Below are positions 33,203 through 61,335 of a stretch of 64,000 nucleotides of DNA, piece by piece. Within the stretch, counting starts at the first letter, position 1; each line of letters opens with the position of its first letter. Below the pieces are notes generated by a model. That model had not been told where the DNA came from, did no database searches, and saw nothing but the letters and a program-made list of their open reading frames with translations. Source of the stretch: Oikopleura dioica (Eukaryota > Animalia > Chordata); the NCBI GenBank assembly GCA_907165135.1, contig OU015569.1, positions 10,726,001 through 10,790,000 on the forward strand, in the 5' to 3' direction. The translations under genes were made by a program, and so were the position numbers.

Positions 33203-33695
33203 TTGGATACTTTAGAAAGGGAGGAGAGAAAAGTCCCCGGGATCGACTTTTTCGGACCTGCCCAACACGTGCACCTGCAAGTTATAATCCGTCATCTCGC
33301 TTTTCCAAGACATCCGGCAGCAGAAGTACCAATAACTTTATTTCCCATTAGCGCGGGTCTTGAAATACAGGTAGTATCCAACACTGATGATTAATATTAA
33401 TGCTCGAATCTAAAATTTAATCTTAAAAATCAGCAATAAAAGGAACAGCTTTATTCTGATTTCGTTGAAATAAGGGTATCACTCTGTTAAATCTATCGAA
33501 AAGCTAAAAGAGCTAGAAAAGCTATCGTACCACTTTCGTACTCTTCTAGCTTTTCGATAGATTTAACAAAGTGATACCCTTATTTTAACTCTTCGCAAGG
33601 CGAATAAGGGCGTTACCTTTAGAAGAAAAAGTCAAAAAACAGGACAATATGACGACTCCAATCCTCATGAGATTTTGGCTCTTACGATCAACTAA
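33203..33695 (+). CDS. Small hypothetical gene, 2 or more exons (5' end unresolved)
   Basis: …PISAGLEIQ|ANKGVTFRR…EILALTIN* joined by phase-0 GT-AG intron 33371-33599. Confidence 0.4.
33464..33589. repeat. About 125-bp palindromic MITE-like insertion inside an intron
   Basis: aaataagggtatcactctgttaaatctatcgaaaagcta (33468-33506) is the near-perfect reverse complement of 33547-33585 (one mismatch). Confidence 0.85.
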
Positions 33696-40834: not shown

Positions 40835-41108
40835 GGTACTGACAATGTCACGAATGTCACGAATGTCACGAGTTGACTGAAAATGTCACGAGTTTCGAAA
40901 AATTGACTTCCATCTTTTTTCGAATTAAGCACTCCGAAGGACCTAACGTCCTTCTTCGTGCATTTTCTGGTAGATTACTCATTGTGTTGGCGGGGCCCAA
41001 CTCTTACTACACGCAAAACTCAAATTTTTCGGCCGCTCTTACTGACGATGTCACGAAAATAGTGGTCAATTTCGTGGCATTTGTGACATTCGTGAAATTT
41101 TCAGTGCC
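40835..41108. mobile_element. MITE-like element with about 44-bp imperfect TIRs built from AATGTCACG repeats
   Basis: ggtactgacaatgtcacgaatgtcacgaatgtcacgagttgac (40835-40877) matches the reverse complement of 41065-41108; no TSD found. Confidence 0.7.
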
Positions 41109-44122: not shown

Positions 44123-44983
44123 ATGAAACTCACTGGCTCCGTTTTAGCTGCTATGGCTTCCGCCGATGTTTGCGGCGATTGTGATGGTAAGAAATGACAT
44201 ATTTAATATATTTAAAAAAATATATTTTTAGCCAACATCGCCGAGTTCAACGCGTGGCACGCTCAGTCGAACATCATCTGCTCCCGCTACACTCACCCAC
44301 GTGACTACGCTCAGTTCGCCGACCCACGGGCAGCTGCTTGCAAGGACTGCAAGGTGCAGTGTGTGCCCGACAACGCCACTTGCCCGGGAACAGACGACCT
44401 CGAGGCCGGCTTCTGGAACAAGACAGCGCTCAAGCTCAAGGAGCAGTACGTCAACCGAGCCGAGATCCAAGCCGCTAAGAAAGTGGCCGAGAAGGCAGCC
44501 GCCACCCTCGCTCGCAACTTGACCAAAGAAAAGAACAAGTACGACAAGATCGTCAACAAGCTCGCCGAGAAGAAAGCCAAGAGCGAAAACAAGGCATGGA
44601 AAGAGTCGGACTGGGAATCCTGGAGAGAGAACCGACGACAGGAAAACGAGGCCAAACGAGCCCAGCGAAAACAGGAGAAGAAAGACGCCAAGGCAGCCGC
44701 CAAGGCTCTCAAGGAACTCAGAAAGGTAGAGTCAAACCATTGAACGATTTGTTTCTTACTCTTTTACCAGCAACAACGACTTGAGAAGCGAGCTCTTGCT
44801 GATAAGAACAAGGTGCTCTTTGCCTTCTACGCCGAGCTTGAGGAGCACTACGACGTCCTCTGCCCAGAAATGCACCTCATCCAGGTAAGCTCAAAGTAAA
44901 GTTGCGTTTCTTAACTTCTCGATTTTAAGGACAATCAGAACATGGCCCGAAAGTTCAACATCTGGAAGCAAGCTCAACAATAA
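44123..44983 (+). CDS. Secreted Cys-rich/Lys-Ala-rich family, copy C (inverted, near-identical to copy A from exon 2 to the stop)
   Basis: MKLTGSVLAAMASADVCGDCD|ANIAEFNAWHAQ…DNQNMARKFNIWKQAQQ*. Confidence 0.85.
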
Positions 44984-45094
44984 TTTCCAAGACTACTCTG
45001 TTTGATGAACTCAGTTCGCGCTGACCCTTTTTTATACTTTTCAAATGGTTGATAAAACCTTTTTTACTTCTTACTTTTGGCGTTCTTGAATCGC

Positions 45095-45112
45095 GACATT
45101 AGTGGAAGTGTT
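45095..45112 (+). promoter_or_regulatory. 3'-UTR hairpin, copy C
   Basis: Sense GACAU-UAGUGGAA-GUGUU. Confidence 0.55.
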
Positions 45113-45475
45113 TTATATTCAAGACTTTACTGTACAAACAAGCACTCTTTTTTATAAATAAATTCTGCAAAAAATACTCAAGCTTGTCCAATTTTATCAA
45201 TCACTTTCATGGAACAATTTATTTATGGCAGTTGCATTCTTAATTTAAAAGACACTCATAGTCATAGAGCTCTTCGAAATTATAGTTACAATCAATTTGA
45301 CAGTTTCAAATAGAAAATGCTAAAATGATGAGTTAGAAAAGGAATTCCATCGCAAATAAATTTAGTTTGTAAAAATATTTCCTGCATGAAAAAAGAGAAG
45401 ACTATTGATCTCGCTTTTTGATATTTTTATTGAAAACACCATGATTTTTGTACAGTGTAGCTCGAGGTTTAAAAT

Positions 45476-45495
45476 TGGCACTCCCACATATGCCA
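45476..45495 (-). promoter_or_regulatory. 3'-UTR hairpin, copy D
   Basis: Sense UGGCAU-AUGUGGGA-GUGCCA. Confidence 0.6.
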
Positions 45496-45800
45496 TTCAG
45501 ATTGTCGTGCCAGCAGGAATCAGCATTTGAGAAACAGTAAATAAAGAAAAAGAAGGTAGATGTTAAGTCCACATGTTATTAGTTAGAATATTTATATCAG
45601 ATTTTTTGGCTGTTATCCATTGTCCCAATACCACAAATTATTTTCGTGCGTATTTTTTTCGATAACATTTCCTATACTTGAGAGTCTGTATTATAGGCAG
45701 GTCAGGGCTTGGCGGGTAATTTGACATAAATAGACATCGTAATAATCGAGGAGGTTTTATATAAAAAATAGGGTCGAGTAAAAGTTAAGATTTGAATTAT

Positions 45801-46762
45801 TTACTGGGACTCGACGAGTTCTTCTTTTATCTGCTCGTACTGGTTCATCATGCGAGTGGACACGTTCTCATCAGCCTAAGGAAAAGGTCGCTTTGAACCT
45901 CTGTTAGAGTTTGGTGCGCTTACGTCAATGAGATGGAGATCAGCGCAAATGGGCTCGTAGTAAAGTTCCAAACTGGCGTAGAATGCAAACTTGGCCTTGT
46001 TCTTCTCCGCGAGAGCTCGTTTCTCGAGTCGTTGTTGCTGAACGGATCATAATTAACTAACTCGGAAGGGACTGAGTTTACCTTTCTAAGCTCCTTGGCT
46101 TCCTTGGCTGCCGCCTTGCGCTCCTTCTTTTCCTGCTTCCTTTCGGCGCGTTTTGCCTCGTTTTCAGCTCGCTTTTCTTCTCGCCAGGCTTGCCAATCTT
46201 CCTTCTTTTGCTGCTTATTAGCTGCCTTTTCAGCCTTTTCCTCGGCTTTCTTTTTCTGTTTCTCATACTAAACAGCAGTTAGAAATTATTAATCTCTTAT
46301 TGGCTGCTGAAAAAACAGCGCCACCAAAAATGGTATATAACCTTTTCGAGTTCTTTCTCCAAGTTGCGAGCGACCATTCTAGCTTTGCCCTCAGCAAGGC
46401 TTTTTTCGTACTTTTCGAGGTACTGAGCGGTGAGTTTCTTCGCGGTCTTGTTCCAGGCAGCGTGTGCGACTGCGCTGACACCTGGACATTTGTCTTCACT
46501 TGGAAGACACTGGATTTTGCACTCTTTGCAAGCGCCACGGGCGGACAGAGACTCTCGGGGGTCAGTGTACCGGGTGCAAGTGATGTCGGAGTTACCGTGC
46601 CAGGCGTTGAAGTTGGCAAGCGCAACTAGAAATCAAATTTCATTGATTTGTTGTTGTTTTTTTATAACTCGAGGCACTGAGTTAGTCGTCTCTAAACTTA
46701 CCGTCACAATCTTGACAGACATCAGCGCTAGCAAAGGCGAAAAGTGATAAGGAAAGCTTCAT
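45801..46762 (-). CDS. Secreted Cys-rich/Lys-Ala-rich family, copy D
   Basis: MKLSLSLFAFASADVCQDCD|VALANFNAWHGNSDITCTRY…CKECKIQC…CPG…; one extra intron after LEKELEK; ends …EELVESQ*. Confidence 0.85.
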
Positions 46763-54624: not shown

Positions 54625-56315
54625 TTAAGTCGTTTCAAAGGCGATGTCTTTTCTTTTTCTTTCATTTTCTGATATGACAGTCGCTGCAGAAGTTGACGCG
54701 ATGATACCCACTTAAAATCGAGGCTAGATGAAAACAAATGCGAGCTAAGTTACCTTCTGTAATAGCAGCAGTGACGAGCGAAGCGGGTATAACATCTTGA
54801 ACGATATTGGCGAAGGTAATGTGTTCGTTGATAGGAAACTCGCGTATCTCGTTTTTAATGTCGAGCGCGTTGATTGCACAGCGGTCCTCGAACTTGTATG
54901 TTTCGCAGCAGACAAGTACCGGCACTAACAAGACGAATAAGTCATCATAAATCGTTAATTGTGATTAACCTTGGTCCTCGTTTGCCACGCAAGCGACAGT
55001 TCCGCAACCCTTTGCACCAACAACTGATCCATTGGCTAAAAGAGAGCGTGCTCCAATAATGACTACATCGGTCTGCTTCATCATATACGACAGGCCAGCA
55101 ATAGTTGAATACTTTGTTTGTATTCCAGCCTCTATAATTCCATTTAGCAATGAAATCTAATATATTATTTCTCTCACCAGTAAGACACTGAAGAACTCTC
55201 TTCCCACTGAAACTCGGCTCTGTGTCGACTACAATGACCTCAAACTTCCTCCCCAGTCTGCTTGCCTTCTCGAAAATGCGCACCATGTTCATCCCGTCGC
55301 CGAAAGTCAATACAGTAGAATTGTCAGTGATCAAGTTGAAAGTCTCGTTGGCGATTGTCGCCTCAGCCTCATCAACGCGCATTTTCCAGAAGAGCTGCAA
55401 CTCTTCGTGGAGAAACTCTTTGAACTCGGCCAAGTTCTTGTCGCGCGCCTGTCGAGAACGAGCGGCTTCCTTGACGATGTCTACTAGACAAGCCTCGCTG
55501 CGCGTCATCGGGTGGCACTTGGAGATGAAGTTGATGTTAGGATTCAACTCGGAGATGAAGTTCTGCTGAATAGAGACGCGATGATGTTGCTTCAACTCGT
55601 CGTTAAAGTTACGCCCGTCGAAGTCGTCGATGAATAATTCCAGGGCGCGCTTCAATTTCTCTGCCATCTCCCGTTCGTCGATTTTGGACAGATGAGCTGC
55701 CTTGAAACCGAGGCGAACGATGGCTCTGTGCAGCTGATTCGGCGCTATAAAACATGAAAAACTTAACTTTCTGTAGCAAAATCTCGATTCGTGATTTCTT
55801 AACCTCTAAATATTGTTTATAACGCCTCCTGTGTTGGATTTTTCGTAATGCCGCGGGAGAACATGTCTTTTCTGCCAAAACCCATCGTTTGAATTGTGTC
55901 TTTGATTCCTGCCGTGTTGCGCATGTAGGTAAACAGTGGCTCAGTAAGCTCAACCTGCGACTGTTGCGTCTTAGTCGTCTTCAAAAGTCGACGAGGGTCA
56001 ATGGACTGAGACTCGGAGATCTTACGCGTGCGGCCGGGGACTCCTTCTGCTTGGAGCGCTGCAACTTGAGGCACGGGTGATGCCGCCTGTAAATGAAATG
56101 AGCACAGTGGGTCGAGTTAAAAAGCTTTCCTTGGGGACAGGTGATGCCTGACGCACTGGCGCTTCTTCTTGCTTCTTTTTCATCGCTTCTTCTTTCTTCC
56201 GCATTGCCTCGGCCTTTTTCGCTTCGACGTCGACACCCTTGTCTCCAACAACTTTTGCTCGACGAGCCGCCTTTTCCAGCTTCTTCTTTTCTTTTGCACT
56301 CAATTCCTTCGTCAT
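54625..56315 (-). CDS. EIF2B4: Translation initiation factor eIF2B delta
   Basis: LSAKEKKKLE N-terminus, HRAIVRLGFK, VLTFG…FEVIVVDTEPSFSGK, VIIGARSLLANGSV…G, PVLVCCETYKF…, VTAAITEVG. Confidence 0.9.
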
Positions 56316-56644
56316 TTTCAGACTCTAAAAAGGATAAAGAAAGATTAGTTTTGTGTTTCGTGCGTCTGTTTATCCGTATTGAAAGCACATGGAAATGTGT
56401 ACGAGTATAATGATACTATCATAAAAATGACAGTATTACTGTTAAAATAAATGGGGCATGGTAAGTGTTTTTGGCAATTAACTTTTGTTCATCTTTTAAC
56501 TTAGATAATACCTAGATTTTTTTTATTTTATATTTCGTGAACTGTTTATCCTTAAAAAATAATGGTGTGCGCATGGTGGTAAATGAACTAGATATAAGCA
56601 TAACTTGTTCTTGAACTTTTGGAGCATCGATGAAAGAGATAGAT

Positions 56645-58226
56645 TCAGCAGTTTTTGTCAGGGGTGTTAGGCGTCAAAGGCAGCGGGTTTTGGGGGAATA
56701 TCAGCTTTTGAATGACTTTTTTCGGCTCTATCTCCGGACCATCTGCTTTAGTGTATGTCGAAGGTTTATTCGTAGCTACACTGGTATATTTGTAATTTTC
56801 AAGTTGTTCCAAAGTTGGCAGAGGTTTCGTCTGAGGCGCTGCAACTGGAACTTTTGACTTTCGTGAAAGCTCGTATTTCTTTGGGTATTGAGCTTTAATC
56901 GCTTCCTCGTTAATCTGTGGAGTTGGAAAAAACAGCTGATCCCCGGAGCCAGCTAAGTACCGAAGTTTAGCATGACGAGTAGACTCTGTAATTTGTGCCT
57001 GTTTTCGGGGATTAAATTGGGAATCAGGAACGATATTTTTATCTAATATTTTCACACGTTTGGTTCTATTATCAGCCACAACATTAACTTCTTGAATCGT
57101 TTTCCGCTTTGATTTAACAGTGATTGGTGGGCTTGCGATGCAAATGTTGAACGAGTCGCTTTCCGACTTGGGTTGCCAGCGGGGTGGAAGCTTGGGGTCC
57201 AGCTTTGGGTTGGGTGTCGACTTGGGCTGGATGCAAGTGAGCTTTCTTTTGGTCTTTTTTGATGAATAAATTGACTGAGCGATGGGAGATGGAAATAATG
57301 GGCTTTTCAAATCCCCACAGCTGATATTTTTTCCGTTGATGGGGGAAAGAGAGGGGATCTTCTTGACGGCTTTTCCATCGATAAGACTCGGCTTTGGCTG
57401 AATGTAAATGTGTCCAGGCATTTTCGCTAGTCTTTGAGGAGATAGATCGCAGAGCGTTTGACTATTGTGCGTGAGGATGAAGGATTTACTTGGTGTTATA
57501 AGAAGCTCTGCGTTCTTGTCGATAACTTGTTTTTTCGAGACTGGCAAGCTTGAATTAATAAATGTTTTGTCGTCACGTTTCGATTGGAAATTTTGCCCGG
57601 CGTAACCGACTTGCAGCTGAGCACTTCTGAGAAGCTCATCAACAACGTCCAAATTGCAGACGACGATTTCAAATGGCTCTGGCCTAAATTTGATTCATTA
57701 AAAATTTGCGTCTCCGAATCTGACCCTACCCTTTGCACGTGAAGTCCCAGATCAATTTCCAATCAGGCTCGAATATTGTCGATTCCGGACCTCTAGACAA
57801 AAGCAACATCCTCGACGTCGGAATTTCGCCGAAGCCCATATTTACAAATGCGTCGTTAATTCGATGCTTGAGGGAAATGACCAGCTCGTCTCTTCGATAA
57901 TCAACGCGGAATCTGAACAACGCATGATTGACCATTACGTTTTGCTCCATCAAAAGTCGTTCTATTCTTGTGCTTTTCAAGGGGGCCATTGGATAGACCA
58001 GTGTTTTTGTGAGACTTTCTATTCCAGATTGAATTTCGTCGATTTTCCTTCTTATATAACTTGATGGATCTTTCAAACTCTTCGCGAATATACCATTTCC
58101 TTTCTTTGCGTTTTCGAAATCCAGGTCGGTAACTGAGATTTGCTTCAATACATTCAAAAAACTGGAAACTATATCATTCTTCGCAGAGCTTTCTGCTGGC
58201 CTCTGGTTTGTCGACATCGCCGACAT
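56645..58226 (-). CDS. Hypothetical protein, about 500 aa, 2 exons (folded N-terminal half, Pro/Lys-rich tail)
   Basis: ORFs 57726-58226 and 56645-57652 join at TCKG|PEPFEIVVCNLDVVDELL through a short GT-AG intron. Confidence 0.7.
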
Positions 58227-58380
58227 TTATTCCGACTCCTGGACCAAGTATAGCTTTCCAATAAAGCTAAAGTGCCAGTTTTCAGCCCCGATTTTCTGAA
58301 TGATTAAGTGTTAAGAGCTTCGTGAATCTCTGATCTGAGATCTATCGCTTATCTGTGATACAAAAATAAATAAGTGCTAA

Positions 58381-60346
58381 TCAAGGCAGGTGAGAATGAT
58401 AAAGTTGGTACTCAAAATTGCTTTCGAACTTGGGTTCGAATGGAATTGAAATGATTTCTGTGAAGCCTTCGTTTCGTGCCGGAGCGACGAATTTCTTCCG
58501 ATGCGAGTAGAGAATCATGTCTTTTATGACGGCTCCGCCTGTTACTGCGCGATATCGACAGTTGTGCTATAATTTATCGTTAATAAAAGGAGCTGTGGAG
58601 AACACACCATAGCTAATTCAATTTCTACGTCGAATAAAACGGAAATTATGGCTTCCAAATTCTGTTCGTGCGCTAGTTTGAGATATCGCTGTCTACTTGC
58701 TACATCTGGATTCGTTGCATCAATCACTACGCTTTTCTTCGCCTGCAGTGCTTCCTTACAGAGCCTAAGACATTTATCCGTTGAGCCAACGTCGTCGCGA
58801 CAGAGAATTTCTATTTCTGGATGGCTTTTCTTCACCTGTTTAGCAAACGAGCTCTTTCCGCAGCCAGGATAGCCAGTAAAAATTACCAAGGACTGTTTTT
58901 CGCTGAGATGAGAATTTAGAATGTCTACATTCTTCTGAAACTTGGCCGAGTTGTCTTTAAGTTTCGCCGTGGCATGTTCTTTAATCTGGAATTCCTCCGC
59001 CGGCCTGTCGAGAAAGAACTCTTCAGGTGTTCGGAAATCTATTCCGCAATTGAGGGCGAAGAGTCGATCGGACGCTGAAAAGTCTTTTTTTCTTCCAGAT
59101 ATTTTATTCGCCGGGCGGCCGGCTGCATCGCCCACCATTACACAACTCCTTGGATCGAGACGAATGAACTCTTTCAGAAAGAAAAAGATGCCGGGTGATG
59201 GTTTTCGGAACATTCCACTGCCGCTGGCGACGCAAACTTCAAAGAGGAAGCCTAACTTGTCTTGTATTTGCGCTATCTTCTCCTGAAACTCTTCTTTCAA
59301 CGTTTTATCCGTCTCCATGCTCTTTTGGTTAGAAATAAAGATGATTCTCGCCCCGTTTTCATGTAGCTTTTTAAGCGTTTCGGGCACTTTCTTGTCCCAC
59401 CAAATCCAGTCGCTAGCGTTTTCGGGAAACTTTCCACCGGACTTTGGCTTGATAATCGTGTGGTCCATGTCAAAGAAAAAGACGCACGGGCTCGAGAAGC
59501 TGTCTTGATCCTCGGGGCAGAAATACATGAAGCCCTTTCCGACATCGTTCCAGCCTGTGAGTTCTACTGGAGAATCGTCTTTTCTCTCCTCTGTTCTGAC
59601 CCAATAGCCGGTCGAGATCTTCATTTTTTTCGCGGAAAAGCGAATTTCGTATTCAATCCCATTCACGGTGAATTTATCCTCGTTCTCTAGAAAAAGCGCT
59701 ATAACTGTTGAAAACGAAAAAAGTACCTAAATGAGTGATCTTTTCCTCTTCCTCTCCGTTCATAGTATACTTGGCGCCGCTCAGGGCTGCTGAATTCGGA
59801 GCGTTTGAGTTTACCCGCGATTTTTTCGGCGGAAGATCCGTTGGTTTTTCACGGAAAATCCGCAGTTTTTTTCACGTAAGATCCGCCGGTTTTCAGCGGA
59901 GAAAAGGGCACGGAGAATCGCGGATGATCCGCCGAAATTTCTGCTCAAAAGACGAAATTAAAGGGTGTTCCACTCTTTTGATTGGCTAGAAAAAAAGGGT
60001 AGCGGGTAATCGCGGGAAATCCGCGCGGCCGAGAAAATCGGACGATCGGAGGATCGGAGGACAGCGCGGAGAAACGGAGAAAATCAGCGGATTATCCGCC
60101 AAAAAAATCCCGGGTAAACGCAAATGCTCCGAATTCGGCAGCCCTGGCGCCGCTAAGTGGTGAAATCGTCGCCGCTTGAATTCGAGAAAAGCGCGAGTCT
60201 GAAGCTGAAAGACAGAATCTTCTGATCTCCTGATCTTCTTCGGGAACTTGAGTCATGATTTCGAAGCGCTCGTCCAGGACTATCTCGCATCCTTCTTTCA
60301 ACACAAAATAGAGCTTCCCTTCTTTGAGTATTTCAAAGCTCCACAT
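58381..60346 (-). CDS. PNKP: Bifunctional polynucleotide kinase 3'-phosphatase, first coding exon interrupted by a MITE
   Basis: HAD motif FDMDHT, KPKSGGKF…DW, ISNQ, FRKPSPG, MVGDAAGR…KKDFSASDRLFALN, Walker A GYPGCGKS, VIDATNPD…R. Confidence 0.92.
59782..60146. mobile_element. hAT-type non-autonomous MITE, 365 bp
   Basis: About 52-bp imperfect TIRs starting CAGGGCTG; perfect 8-bp TSD GCGCCGCT at 59774-59781 and 60147-60154; internal GCGGA/TCCGC repeats; no transposase. Confidence 0.93.
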
Positions 60347-60432
60347 TCTGAAAATCAAAAATCCTTGATAATAAGGGGGAACATGTAAATTTTCGAAATT
60401 TTGAAGACAAGGAAAAGTGAAGCGCTCTTTCT

Positions 60433-60648
60433 TCAGAGCTGCTCCGATTTGTAAAAGTCAGAAGTCAGGTAAATGACGACGCCGATAAAGTTAACTCCCG
60501 CCAGCGCCCAAATGAACTTCCTTCCGTGGCGGAGACCCTTGTCCCGTCGAGCCACAGGGTCAACGACTTCCACTGGCTTTAGGCGCACGCGTTTCCCGTC
60601 GATGATTTTCGTTCTCGCGGTATTCAAAATGCAGCGAGACAGGCGCAT
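60433..60648 (-). CDS. Small single-pass protein with mitochondrial-presequence-like N-terminus (71 aa)
   Basis: MRLSRCILNTARTK… then one TM segment (FIWALAGVNFIGVVIYL); lies between WDR83OS and PNKP on the same strand. Confidence 0.6.
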   Translation of the reverse strand: MRLSRCILNTARTKIIDGKRVRLKPVEVVDPVARRDKGLRHGRKFIWALAGVNFIGVVIYLTSDFYKSEQL

Positions 60649-60918
60649 CGGCCAAAATTCTTAAAATTGTCAGTTTAAATTCTTGGAGACAAGATTCTAG
60701 TCACTTGAAAATACAGTAATTACTGAAATTGGTTTAAAATCAAAATTGAATTTTGAAAAACTAAAAATACCGCGTTACACGAAAGTTTAAAGGAAGAAGG
60801 AAAGGGTTGAAGATTGCGATTGAAAGTTTCGATTTGAAACAATTAATTTGTCTAATGTTCTCTCTTTGAGTTGGACTGTTCTGAGTTCTGGACGGAAGTG
60901 AATGTGTTTCATTTTCGC

Positions 60919-61335
60919 TCATTTGGGAAGGCTCATCGGCGTCGGATTTTGAAGATAAGTCATCACCACCGCCGAGATCGAAAGCATCAGAGACGAGAGC
61001 ACTGATTCGCGATTATTTCTAGTCGAGAAACAAGAAAAAAACTGACCTTGACGAGCGTCTTCGGTCGATCTCGAGTTGGCGTAAGAAGTCATCGAGCAAA
61101 AAATCGCCGCCCAGGCGCACCACTTGATCTTCATCAACAAGCCGCACATGCTACACGAAGAAAAGCGTAAAGAAAGATCGAGGTAGAGCTTGTTCTACCT
61201 GAAGGCCATTGTGAGAAGATTGAGGTAATCAGGGAGCGGATCTGCTGCTTGCTGAGAAGCAGTAGTTGGAGCGACAAAGCGGAAAATGCGCTGTTGCCTT
61301 TTTGGGCTGACCCATTTGAAAACGTCTTCTACCAT
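60919..61335 (-). CDS. WDR83OS: PAT complex subunit Asterix
   Basis: [10 protein letters not shown]…F|[20 protein letters not shown]…ANSRSTED…[19 protein letters not shown] matches Asterix. Confidence 0.92.

Follow-up and report, generated by a model that had tools for sequence, protein, structure and literature searches.

The origin of new spliceosomal introns is a long-standing question, and most of the evidence bearing on it comes from old, fixed introns. A transposon sitting in a conserved coding exon raises the question at a single locus, as a fresh insertion could be an intron, could be exonised or could kill the gene. An insertion of this kind interrupts a minus-strand gene in the 64,000-nt stretch of Oikopleura dioica DNA analysed here (contig OU015569.1 of assembly GCA_907165135.1, forward-strand positions 10,726,001 to 10,790,000; hereafter the window, whose coordinates are used throughout). 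A preliminary description of this DNA treated the element as a candidate introner event, i.e. as a hAT MITE that can be spliced out of its exon in frame through a GG donor and an AG acceptor.

The host gene and the element within it

By its domain content, the interrupted gene is PNKP, encoding a bifunctional polynucleotide phosphatase/kinase: exon 2 returned matches to the Pfam profiles PNK3P (PF08645, 7.5e-46) and AAA_33 (PF13671, P-loop kinase family, 1.2e-10), and named PNKP homologues of many animals share 35-43 % identity with it. In the protein database the nearest relatives reach 68-70 %; P0001 originates from a genomic ENA contig (L008) and P0002 from a spliced polycistronic JGI contig (L009). 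Both orthologues read TISPLSGAKY(M/T)ING, unbroken across the insertion site, and because they read through it we conclude from the alignment that the site is real, conserved coding sequence and that its ancestral state is an uninterrupted exon. A PNKP start downstream of the insertion, which would make the site non-coding, was ruled out, as the relatives read SPLSGAKY across it. The first intron lies at the same position in L008 as in the window, and a small correction to the preliminary description places the end of exon 1 at 59727 and intron 1 at 59726-59687.

The insertion falls between codons 65 and 68, in an N-terminal FHA-like region that is the least conserved part of PNKP. A Pfam search of this region returned no match even at E = 10, AF2 pLDDT is below 50 over residues 1-118, and it was MAFFT alone that set the region opposite the FHA of other PNKPs.

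The spliced JGI contig (4144 nt) carries the genes for a 71-residue protein, PNKP and an IF-2B-family protein, and from this arrangement it looks like a polycistronic operon mRNA. The same three genes lie on the minus strand in the window (54625-60648), where about 2.1 kb with other ORFs (56645-58226) separates PNKP from the IF-2B-family gene.

As previously described, a 365-bp element with an 8-bp TSD occupies the first PNKP coding exon (Table 1). On the minus strand the junctions read ATT TCA CCA CTT AGC GGC GC / CAGGGCTG...element...CAGCCCTG / AGC GGC GCC AAG TAT ACT ATG. The TIR arms are 67 nt each and 87 % complementary, and the terminal 21-mer from CAGGGCTG has exactly two exact matches within the window vs none expected; the window holds one copy of the element only. 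All three sense frames of the element contain stops and its sense strand lacks an ATG, an absence that is non-significant under a first-order Markov model (P ~0.07) and that was on this ground ruled out as an adaptation. Two further points of the preliminary description were borne out: read-through of the unspliced element reaches a TAA at 60094-60092 that ends the PNKP frame, and removal of the element with one TSD copy restores an uninterrupted reading, giving ...ISPLSGAKYTMNG.

The TIRs, the TSD with its one-copy empty site (see below) and the short, non-coding, multi-copy character of the element are those of a MITE, while the 8-bp TSD and the CAGGG termini, which fit YARNG, the terminal motif of the hAT superfamily, are those of a hAT transposon. 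On these features, the PNKP-exon element is a hAT-like MITE. The hAT target preference nTnnnnAn, a weak tendency that does not define the superfamily, is not seen at this site, where AGCGGCGC / GCGCCGCT has neither T2 nor A7. No autonomous partner with a hAT transposase and the same termini was found within the window, and an Rfam search of the element returned no match. A metagenome scan with the 21-nt terminus yielded seven loci, all of them chance matches of 23 nt, unconnected with the element, on contigs with 56 % GC.

Elsewhere in the window there are inverted repeats at 33464-33589 (56-nt arms, 14 nt apart), 40835-41108 (37-nt arms, 200 nt apart) and 44768-46040 (66-nt arms, 1141 nt apart), which by their structure could be MITEs or hairpin elements. 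A C/D-box snoRNA-like match to sR38 on the minus strand at 60917-60970 (19.4 bits vs a gathering score of 50, E = 0.28) is probably due to chance.

Table 1. Features of the PNKP locus and of neighbouring introns, in window coordinates (a slash marks a proposed or known exon-intron border)
Feature	Position	Strand	Basis or remark
Trans-splice-like acceptor ttttcag	end at 60348	-	sequence
PNKP ATG	60346-60344	-	behind acceptor-like ttttcag
PNKP coding exon 1	59727-60346	-	element inside
TSD, upstream copy, 8-bp AGCGGCGC	60147-60154	-	codons S65, G66 and first two bases of A67
MITE, non-autonomous DNA transposon	59782-60146	-	365 bp; no long ORF
TIR, gene-upstream arm	60080-60146		minus-strand start CAGGGCTG
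TIR, gene-downstream arm	59782-59848		minus-strand end ...CAGCCCTG
TSD, downstream copy, 8-bp AGCGGCGC	59774-59781	-	exact match to upstream copy
Premature TAA on element retention	60092-60094	-	read-through translation
Hypothetical GG-AG intron, 364 nt, +9 nt, product LSGASGAK	59780-60143	-	sequence arithmetic
Alternative hypothetical GC-AG intron, 373 nt, no net length change, K68R	59770-60142	-	pair enumeration
Alternative hypothetical canonical GT-AG intron, 340 nt, +33 nt (+11 residues)	59780-60119	-	pair enumeration
Further candidate pairs, GC/GG donors with ttcag or gcag acceptors	acceptors at 59790 or 59787	-	pair enumeration
In-frame ATG, M71 of uninterrupted protein	59761-59763	-	first ATG downstream of element
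PNKP intron 1, canonical GT-AG	59687-59726	-	position kept in L008; spliced out in L009
PNKP exon 2, phosphatase and kinase domains	58608-59686	-	Pfam matches
PNKP intron 2, canonical GT-AG	58567-58607	-	RNA loose ends at 58567
PNKP exon 3	58381-58566	-	stop TGA 58383-58381
GA-AG intron, IF-2B-family gene	56129-56087	-	AAG/GAAAGC...ACAG; homology to L009:1881-3317 protein
GA-AG intron, IF-2B-family gene	55828-55734	-	CAG/GAGGCG...TCAG; homology to L009:1881-3317 protein

Filled and empty alleles, relatives and copy number

Short-read contigs from two DNA runs of one study (X1 and X2) were compared with the window. X1 matches the window perfectly, and its contigs at 58250-59810 and 60117-60650 start in the flanks and extend into the element by about 29 nt, with no mismatches at the junctions and at single-copy depth (104 and 103.3); no direct flank-to-flank (empty) joint was found among them. 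In X2, which differs from the window by two letters in about 900, a contig at single-copy depth (29.9) skips exactly 373 nt (59774-60146), with eight ambiguous letters, leaving one TSD copy and no footprint. The preliminary description had called for a comparison with the empty allele, and X2 provides it. Given this empty site and the two divergent relatives in which the exon is uninterrupted, the insertion is young and still segregates as a presence/absence polymorphism.

The reference-like animal, X1, appears to carry only the filled allele. We infer its homozygosity, because contigs can drop variants; the data set does, however, retain allelic contigs, X2 having two sets of them at 59222-59403. 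One of these sets equals the window and the other differs by 4-5 letters per 100, which makes the X2 individual a heterozygote immediately downstream of the insertion.

The contigs of both X1 and X2 have one extra A behind 59716, in the homopolymer of intron 1, which is probably a single-base assembly error of the kind typical of long-read assemblies. With at least one such homopolymer error nearby, it could be asked whether the long-read assembly misplaced a repeat into the exon. We regard this as extremely improbable and exclude it, since independent X1 short-read contigs cross both flank-element junctions without a mismatch, and an exact 8-bp TSD together with a matching empty allele in X2 is the signature of real transposition.

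Within the element, contigs reach about 13-18 times the flank depth, a ratio that is not a strict copy number, and several different flanks show as loose ends at 59782 and 60147. Some of the element pieces are identical to the PNKP copy and others are 8-9 % different. Taken together, these data indicate a family that is small and was active recently, with some 10-20 copies, again not a strict count. Judged by this depth, the family falls far below an introner-scale burst. What the present analysis adds to the preliminary description is the empty allele of X2, the uninterrupted relatives, the filled-only state of X1 and the small size of the family.

Two bulk RNA runs (X12 and X13) that share the species label of the DNA runs gave three and seven reads, respectively; all are 90-95 % alike and confined to exon 3 (58412-58573), which is better conserved than the other exons. 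Where the reads overhang position 58567, they encode FFDVEIDLAM, as does the divergent relative P0001. By this overhang and by read identity, X12 and X13 belong to another lineage, whose PNKP is about 70 % identical; neither run has a read at the insertion site, which is empty in that lineage anyway. Nucleotide identity of PNKP exon 2 to L008 and L009 is about 68-70 %, and sequence distances of this size are those of cryptic species that go by one name.

Splice sites and the fate of the filled allele

The genes are compact, with introns of 40-95 nt, which fits an Oikopleura-type larvacean, as do the GA-AG introns, the operon-like array and the existence of an RNA lineage of the same label that is only about 70 % identical. 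In the IF-2B-family gene, two of five introns are GA-AG by homology to the L009 protein and the other three GT-AG, so that non-GT introns, stated earlier for Oikopleura, are indeed in use in this genome. A share of about 11-12 % non-canonical introns is reported for O. dioica (Denoeud 2010, as cited in PMC8008620), with an excess of GA-AG (PMC7072748), and O. dioica GA-AG introns are reported to be short and to follow AG/GA with A at +3. The two GA-AG introns of the window agree with both the reported frequency and the AG/GA-A context.

Removal of 60143-59780 would give ...LSGASGAKY, in frame; the earlier arithmetic, by which excision of 364 nt leaves 9 extra nt, is correct, and the product is stop-free. 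Frame preservation as a mark of the GG-AG intron fares less well. Enumeration of the G[N]-AG pairs that remove the stops of the element gave 184 that are in frame and stop-free (16 of them GT-AG), and any pair has a one-in-three chance of keeping the frame; the in-frame fit of the GG-AG pair is thus neither distinctive nor evidence of adaptation. By the same enumeration, nearly every MITE insertion into an exon can be expected to offer some in-frame G[N]-AG pair. Pairs near the borders of the element include a length-neutral GC-AG, a GT-AG and several that combine GC or GG donors with ttcag or gcag acceptors. Exact restoration by a G[N]-AG intron is not available, as a 373-nt removal has 11 possible registers and none of them combines an initial G with a terminal AG.

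Both proposed GG-AG sites look weak. The candidate donor CCAG/GGCTGC matches the consensus only at the exonic CAG and at G+1 and G+5, with C, T and C at +3, +4 and +6 off it, and the candidate acceptor CCCTGAG/C is without a pyrimidine tract. The element itself contains stronger acceptors (tttttttctag at 59986 and ttttgagcag at 59941), which lead to stops in every frame. The pre-mRNA is predicted to fold into a hairpin (-179.6 kcal/mol, z = -9.8) that pairs the two proposed splice sites and whose stem is lengthened by the palindromic GGCGCC of the TSD. Such a structure, if formed, could hinder the access of U1 and U2AF, or it could bring the splice ends together, by analogy with the terminal hairpins described as approximating the splice sites of Fritillaria and euglenid introns. 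An ab initio splice-site matrix, derived from ORF-joining candidates of the window, was rejected as too noisy, having mis-called both known PNKP introns, and a protein-database search for a transcript-derived protein of the same lineage with the junction returned a best match only 70 % identical.

We take the locus to be a recent, segregating insertion of a low-copy hAT-like MITE in PNKP exon 1, and put at about even the probability that its filled allele is an ordinary insertion allele, leaky or null, rather than an established intron. MITEs that land at random in exons usually disrupt the gene. On such an allele, any loss of the element from transcripts would proceed through weak cryptic sites at or near the element ends, where several G[N]-AG pairs would compete. 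With a mixture of in-frame and out-of-frame products, such an allele would be hypomorphic (leaky) or null, and the GG-AG junction 60143-59780 would be one candidate among several. The occurrence in this genome of non-GT introns preceded by an exonic AG counts against a plain insertion. X1, seemingly without an intact allele yet a sequenced animal, mildly favours a functional filled allele, and the lack of an intact allele together with the permissive splicing of the species shifts the odds toward some function. Efficient in-frame removal of the element, at whichever junction, is on the sequence possible, if on the unlikely side. Clean removal as the 364-nt GG-AG intron, which would make the locus a new intron caught at birth and leave PNKP with an SGA insertion, would draw its donor from the CAG/GG terminus and its acceptor from the AG that opens the downstream TSD. 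This model has in its favour a stop-free product, an exonic CAG before the donor that resembles the AG/GA context of real introns in the window and in the literature, the commonness of non-canonical G[N]-AG introns in O. dioica, the element-plus-duplication logic shared with introners and the lack of an empty allele in X1. It is nonetheless quite unlikely in our estimation, with a donor off consensus at +3, +4 and +6 where reported GA donors have A at +3, a poor acceptor, both sites inside a GC-rich duplex and a frame that any pair keeps one time in three and that 183 other pairs keep too.

Another pair than 60143-59780 might instead carry efficient in-frame removal. Such pairs were found in the enumeration (Table 1), GT and GC are the commonest donor classes generally, and the ttcag acceptor is closer in look to local acceptors; the objections from the hairpin and from weak context hold here too, and we judge this outcome unlikely. 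A different kind of function would be retained by an N-terminally truncated PNKP starting at M71 with both catalytic domains kept, through SL trans-splicing onto an internal acceptor (59986 or 59941) or through re-initiation. The element has no sense-strand ATG and contains strong acceptor-like sites, the gene lies in an operon-like array for which the relative behind L009 gives a polycistronic mRNA, SL trans-splicing is reported for 39 % of O. dioica genes, and the N-terminal region is the part of PNKP least conserved. The missing ATG is, however, within chance and the N-terminal region is still conserved between lineages, leaving truncation a slim prospect. The reading as an ordinary leaky or null insertion allele remains the one we prefer, and on its sequence the PNKP insertion is a reasonable but unproven candidate for a proto-intron.

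Relation to known systems and implications

Maize hAT elements are the classic case of partial removal through cryptic terminal sites; Wessler and colleagues reportedly found Ds/Ac (hAT) and dSpm elements spliced from maize exons, producing leaky alleles. The PNKP insertion is likewise a hAT-type non-autonomous element in a coding exon with candidate cryptic sites at its termini. Most of the element can be removed in maize, and the resulting proteins are slightly altered and partly functional. PNKP differs from maize in its candidate donors, most of which are non-GT, in its chordate host, whose spliceosome is permissive, and in that splicing is hypothetical.

Introners, known from Micromonas, Aureococcus, dinoflagellates and others (reviewed in PMC11282704; PNAS 2022, PMC9860276), are also DNA elements with TIRs and TSDs, and the sites orthologous to the PNKP insertion are empty (L008, L009 and the X2 allele). 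The introner scheme, in which the element brings one splice site and the TSD is co-opted for the other, is at PNKP a candidate that the sequence permits. In contrast to introners, the family has about 10-20 copies rather than hundreds to thousands, the TSD is 8 bp rather than 3-5 bp and the candidate removal is imprecise (+9 nt). Among the marks of introners and TE-derived introns, the one seen at the PNKP site is the intron-less orthologous position. The main text of PMC9860276 makes no mention of Oikopleura or tunicates.

A closer parallel in taxonomic terms is Fritillaria borealis, of the same animal class, for which MITE-derived non-canonical introns with border TIRs and TSDs, non-GT/AG ends and species-specific positions are reported (Henriet et al. 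2019, as cited in PMC11282704 and PMC13326754). As these sources relate it, the Fritillaria introns have AG-AC and AG-AT ends alongside duplicated U2AF subunits, whereas the PNKP candidate is G[N]-AG, the known class of Oikopleura, and a single polymorphic locus. For Oikopleura itself, TE-derived intron gain appears as an entry in a review table citing Denoeud 2010, so the earlier statement that such gain is described in this lineage agrees with reports for both genera; MITE-derived non-canonical introns are established in Fritillaria. The donor class proposed at PNKP is that of the O. dioica G[N]-AG introns, two GA-AG examples of which were verified by homology in the window, but the known examples are short with AG/GA followed by A, whereas the PNKP candidate is 364 nt long, has GG followed by C and is highly structured.

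The broadest form of the proposal would make this hAT-type MITE family an intron generator in a chordate, the CAG/GG terminus supplying the donor and any TSD starting with AG the acceptor, with 9 nt added in frame and PNKP as an intron caught at birth; on the sequence evidence we hold this to be improbable. The PNKP locus offers filled and empty alleles in one population of a culturable animal that tolerates non-GT splice sites. Without splicing, the filled allele would be an ordinary insertion allele in a DNA-repair gene, whether deleterious or tolerated; splicing of the element would link the G[N]-AG excess and the lineage-specific introns of Oikopleura to MITE activity.
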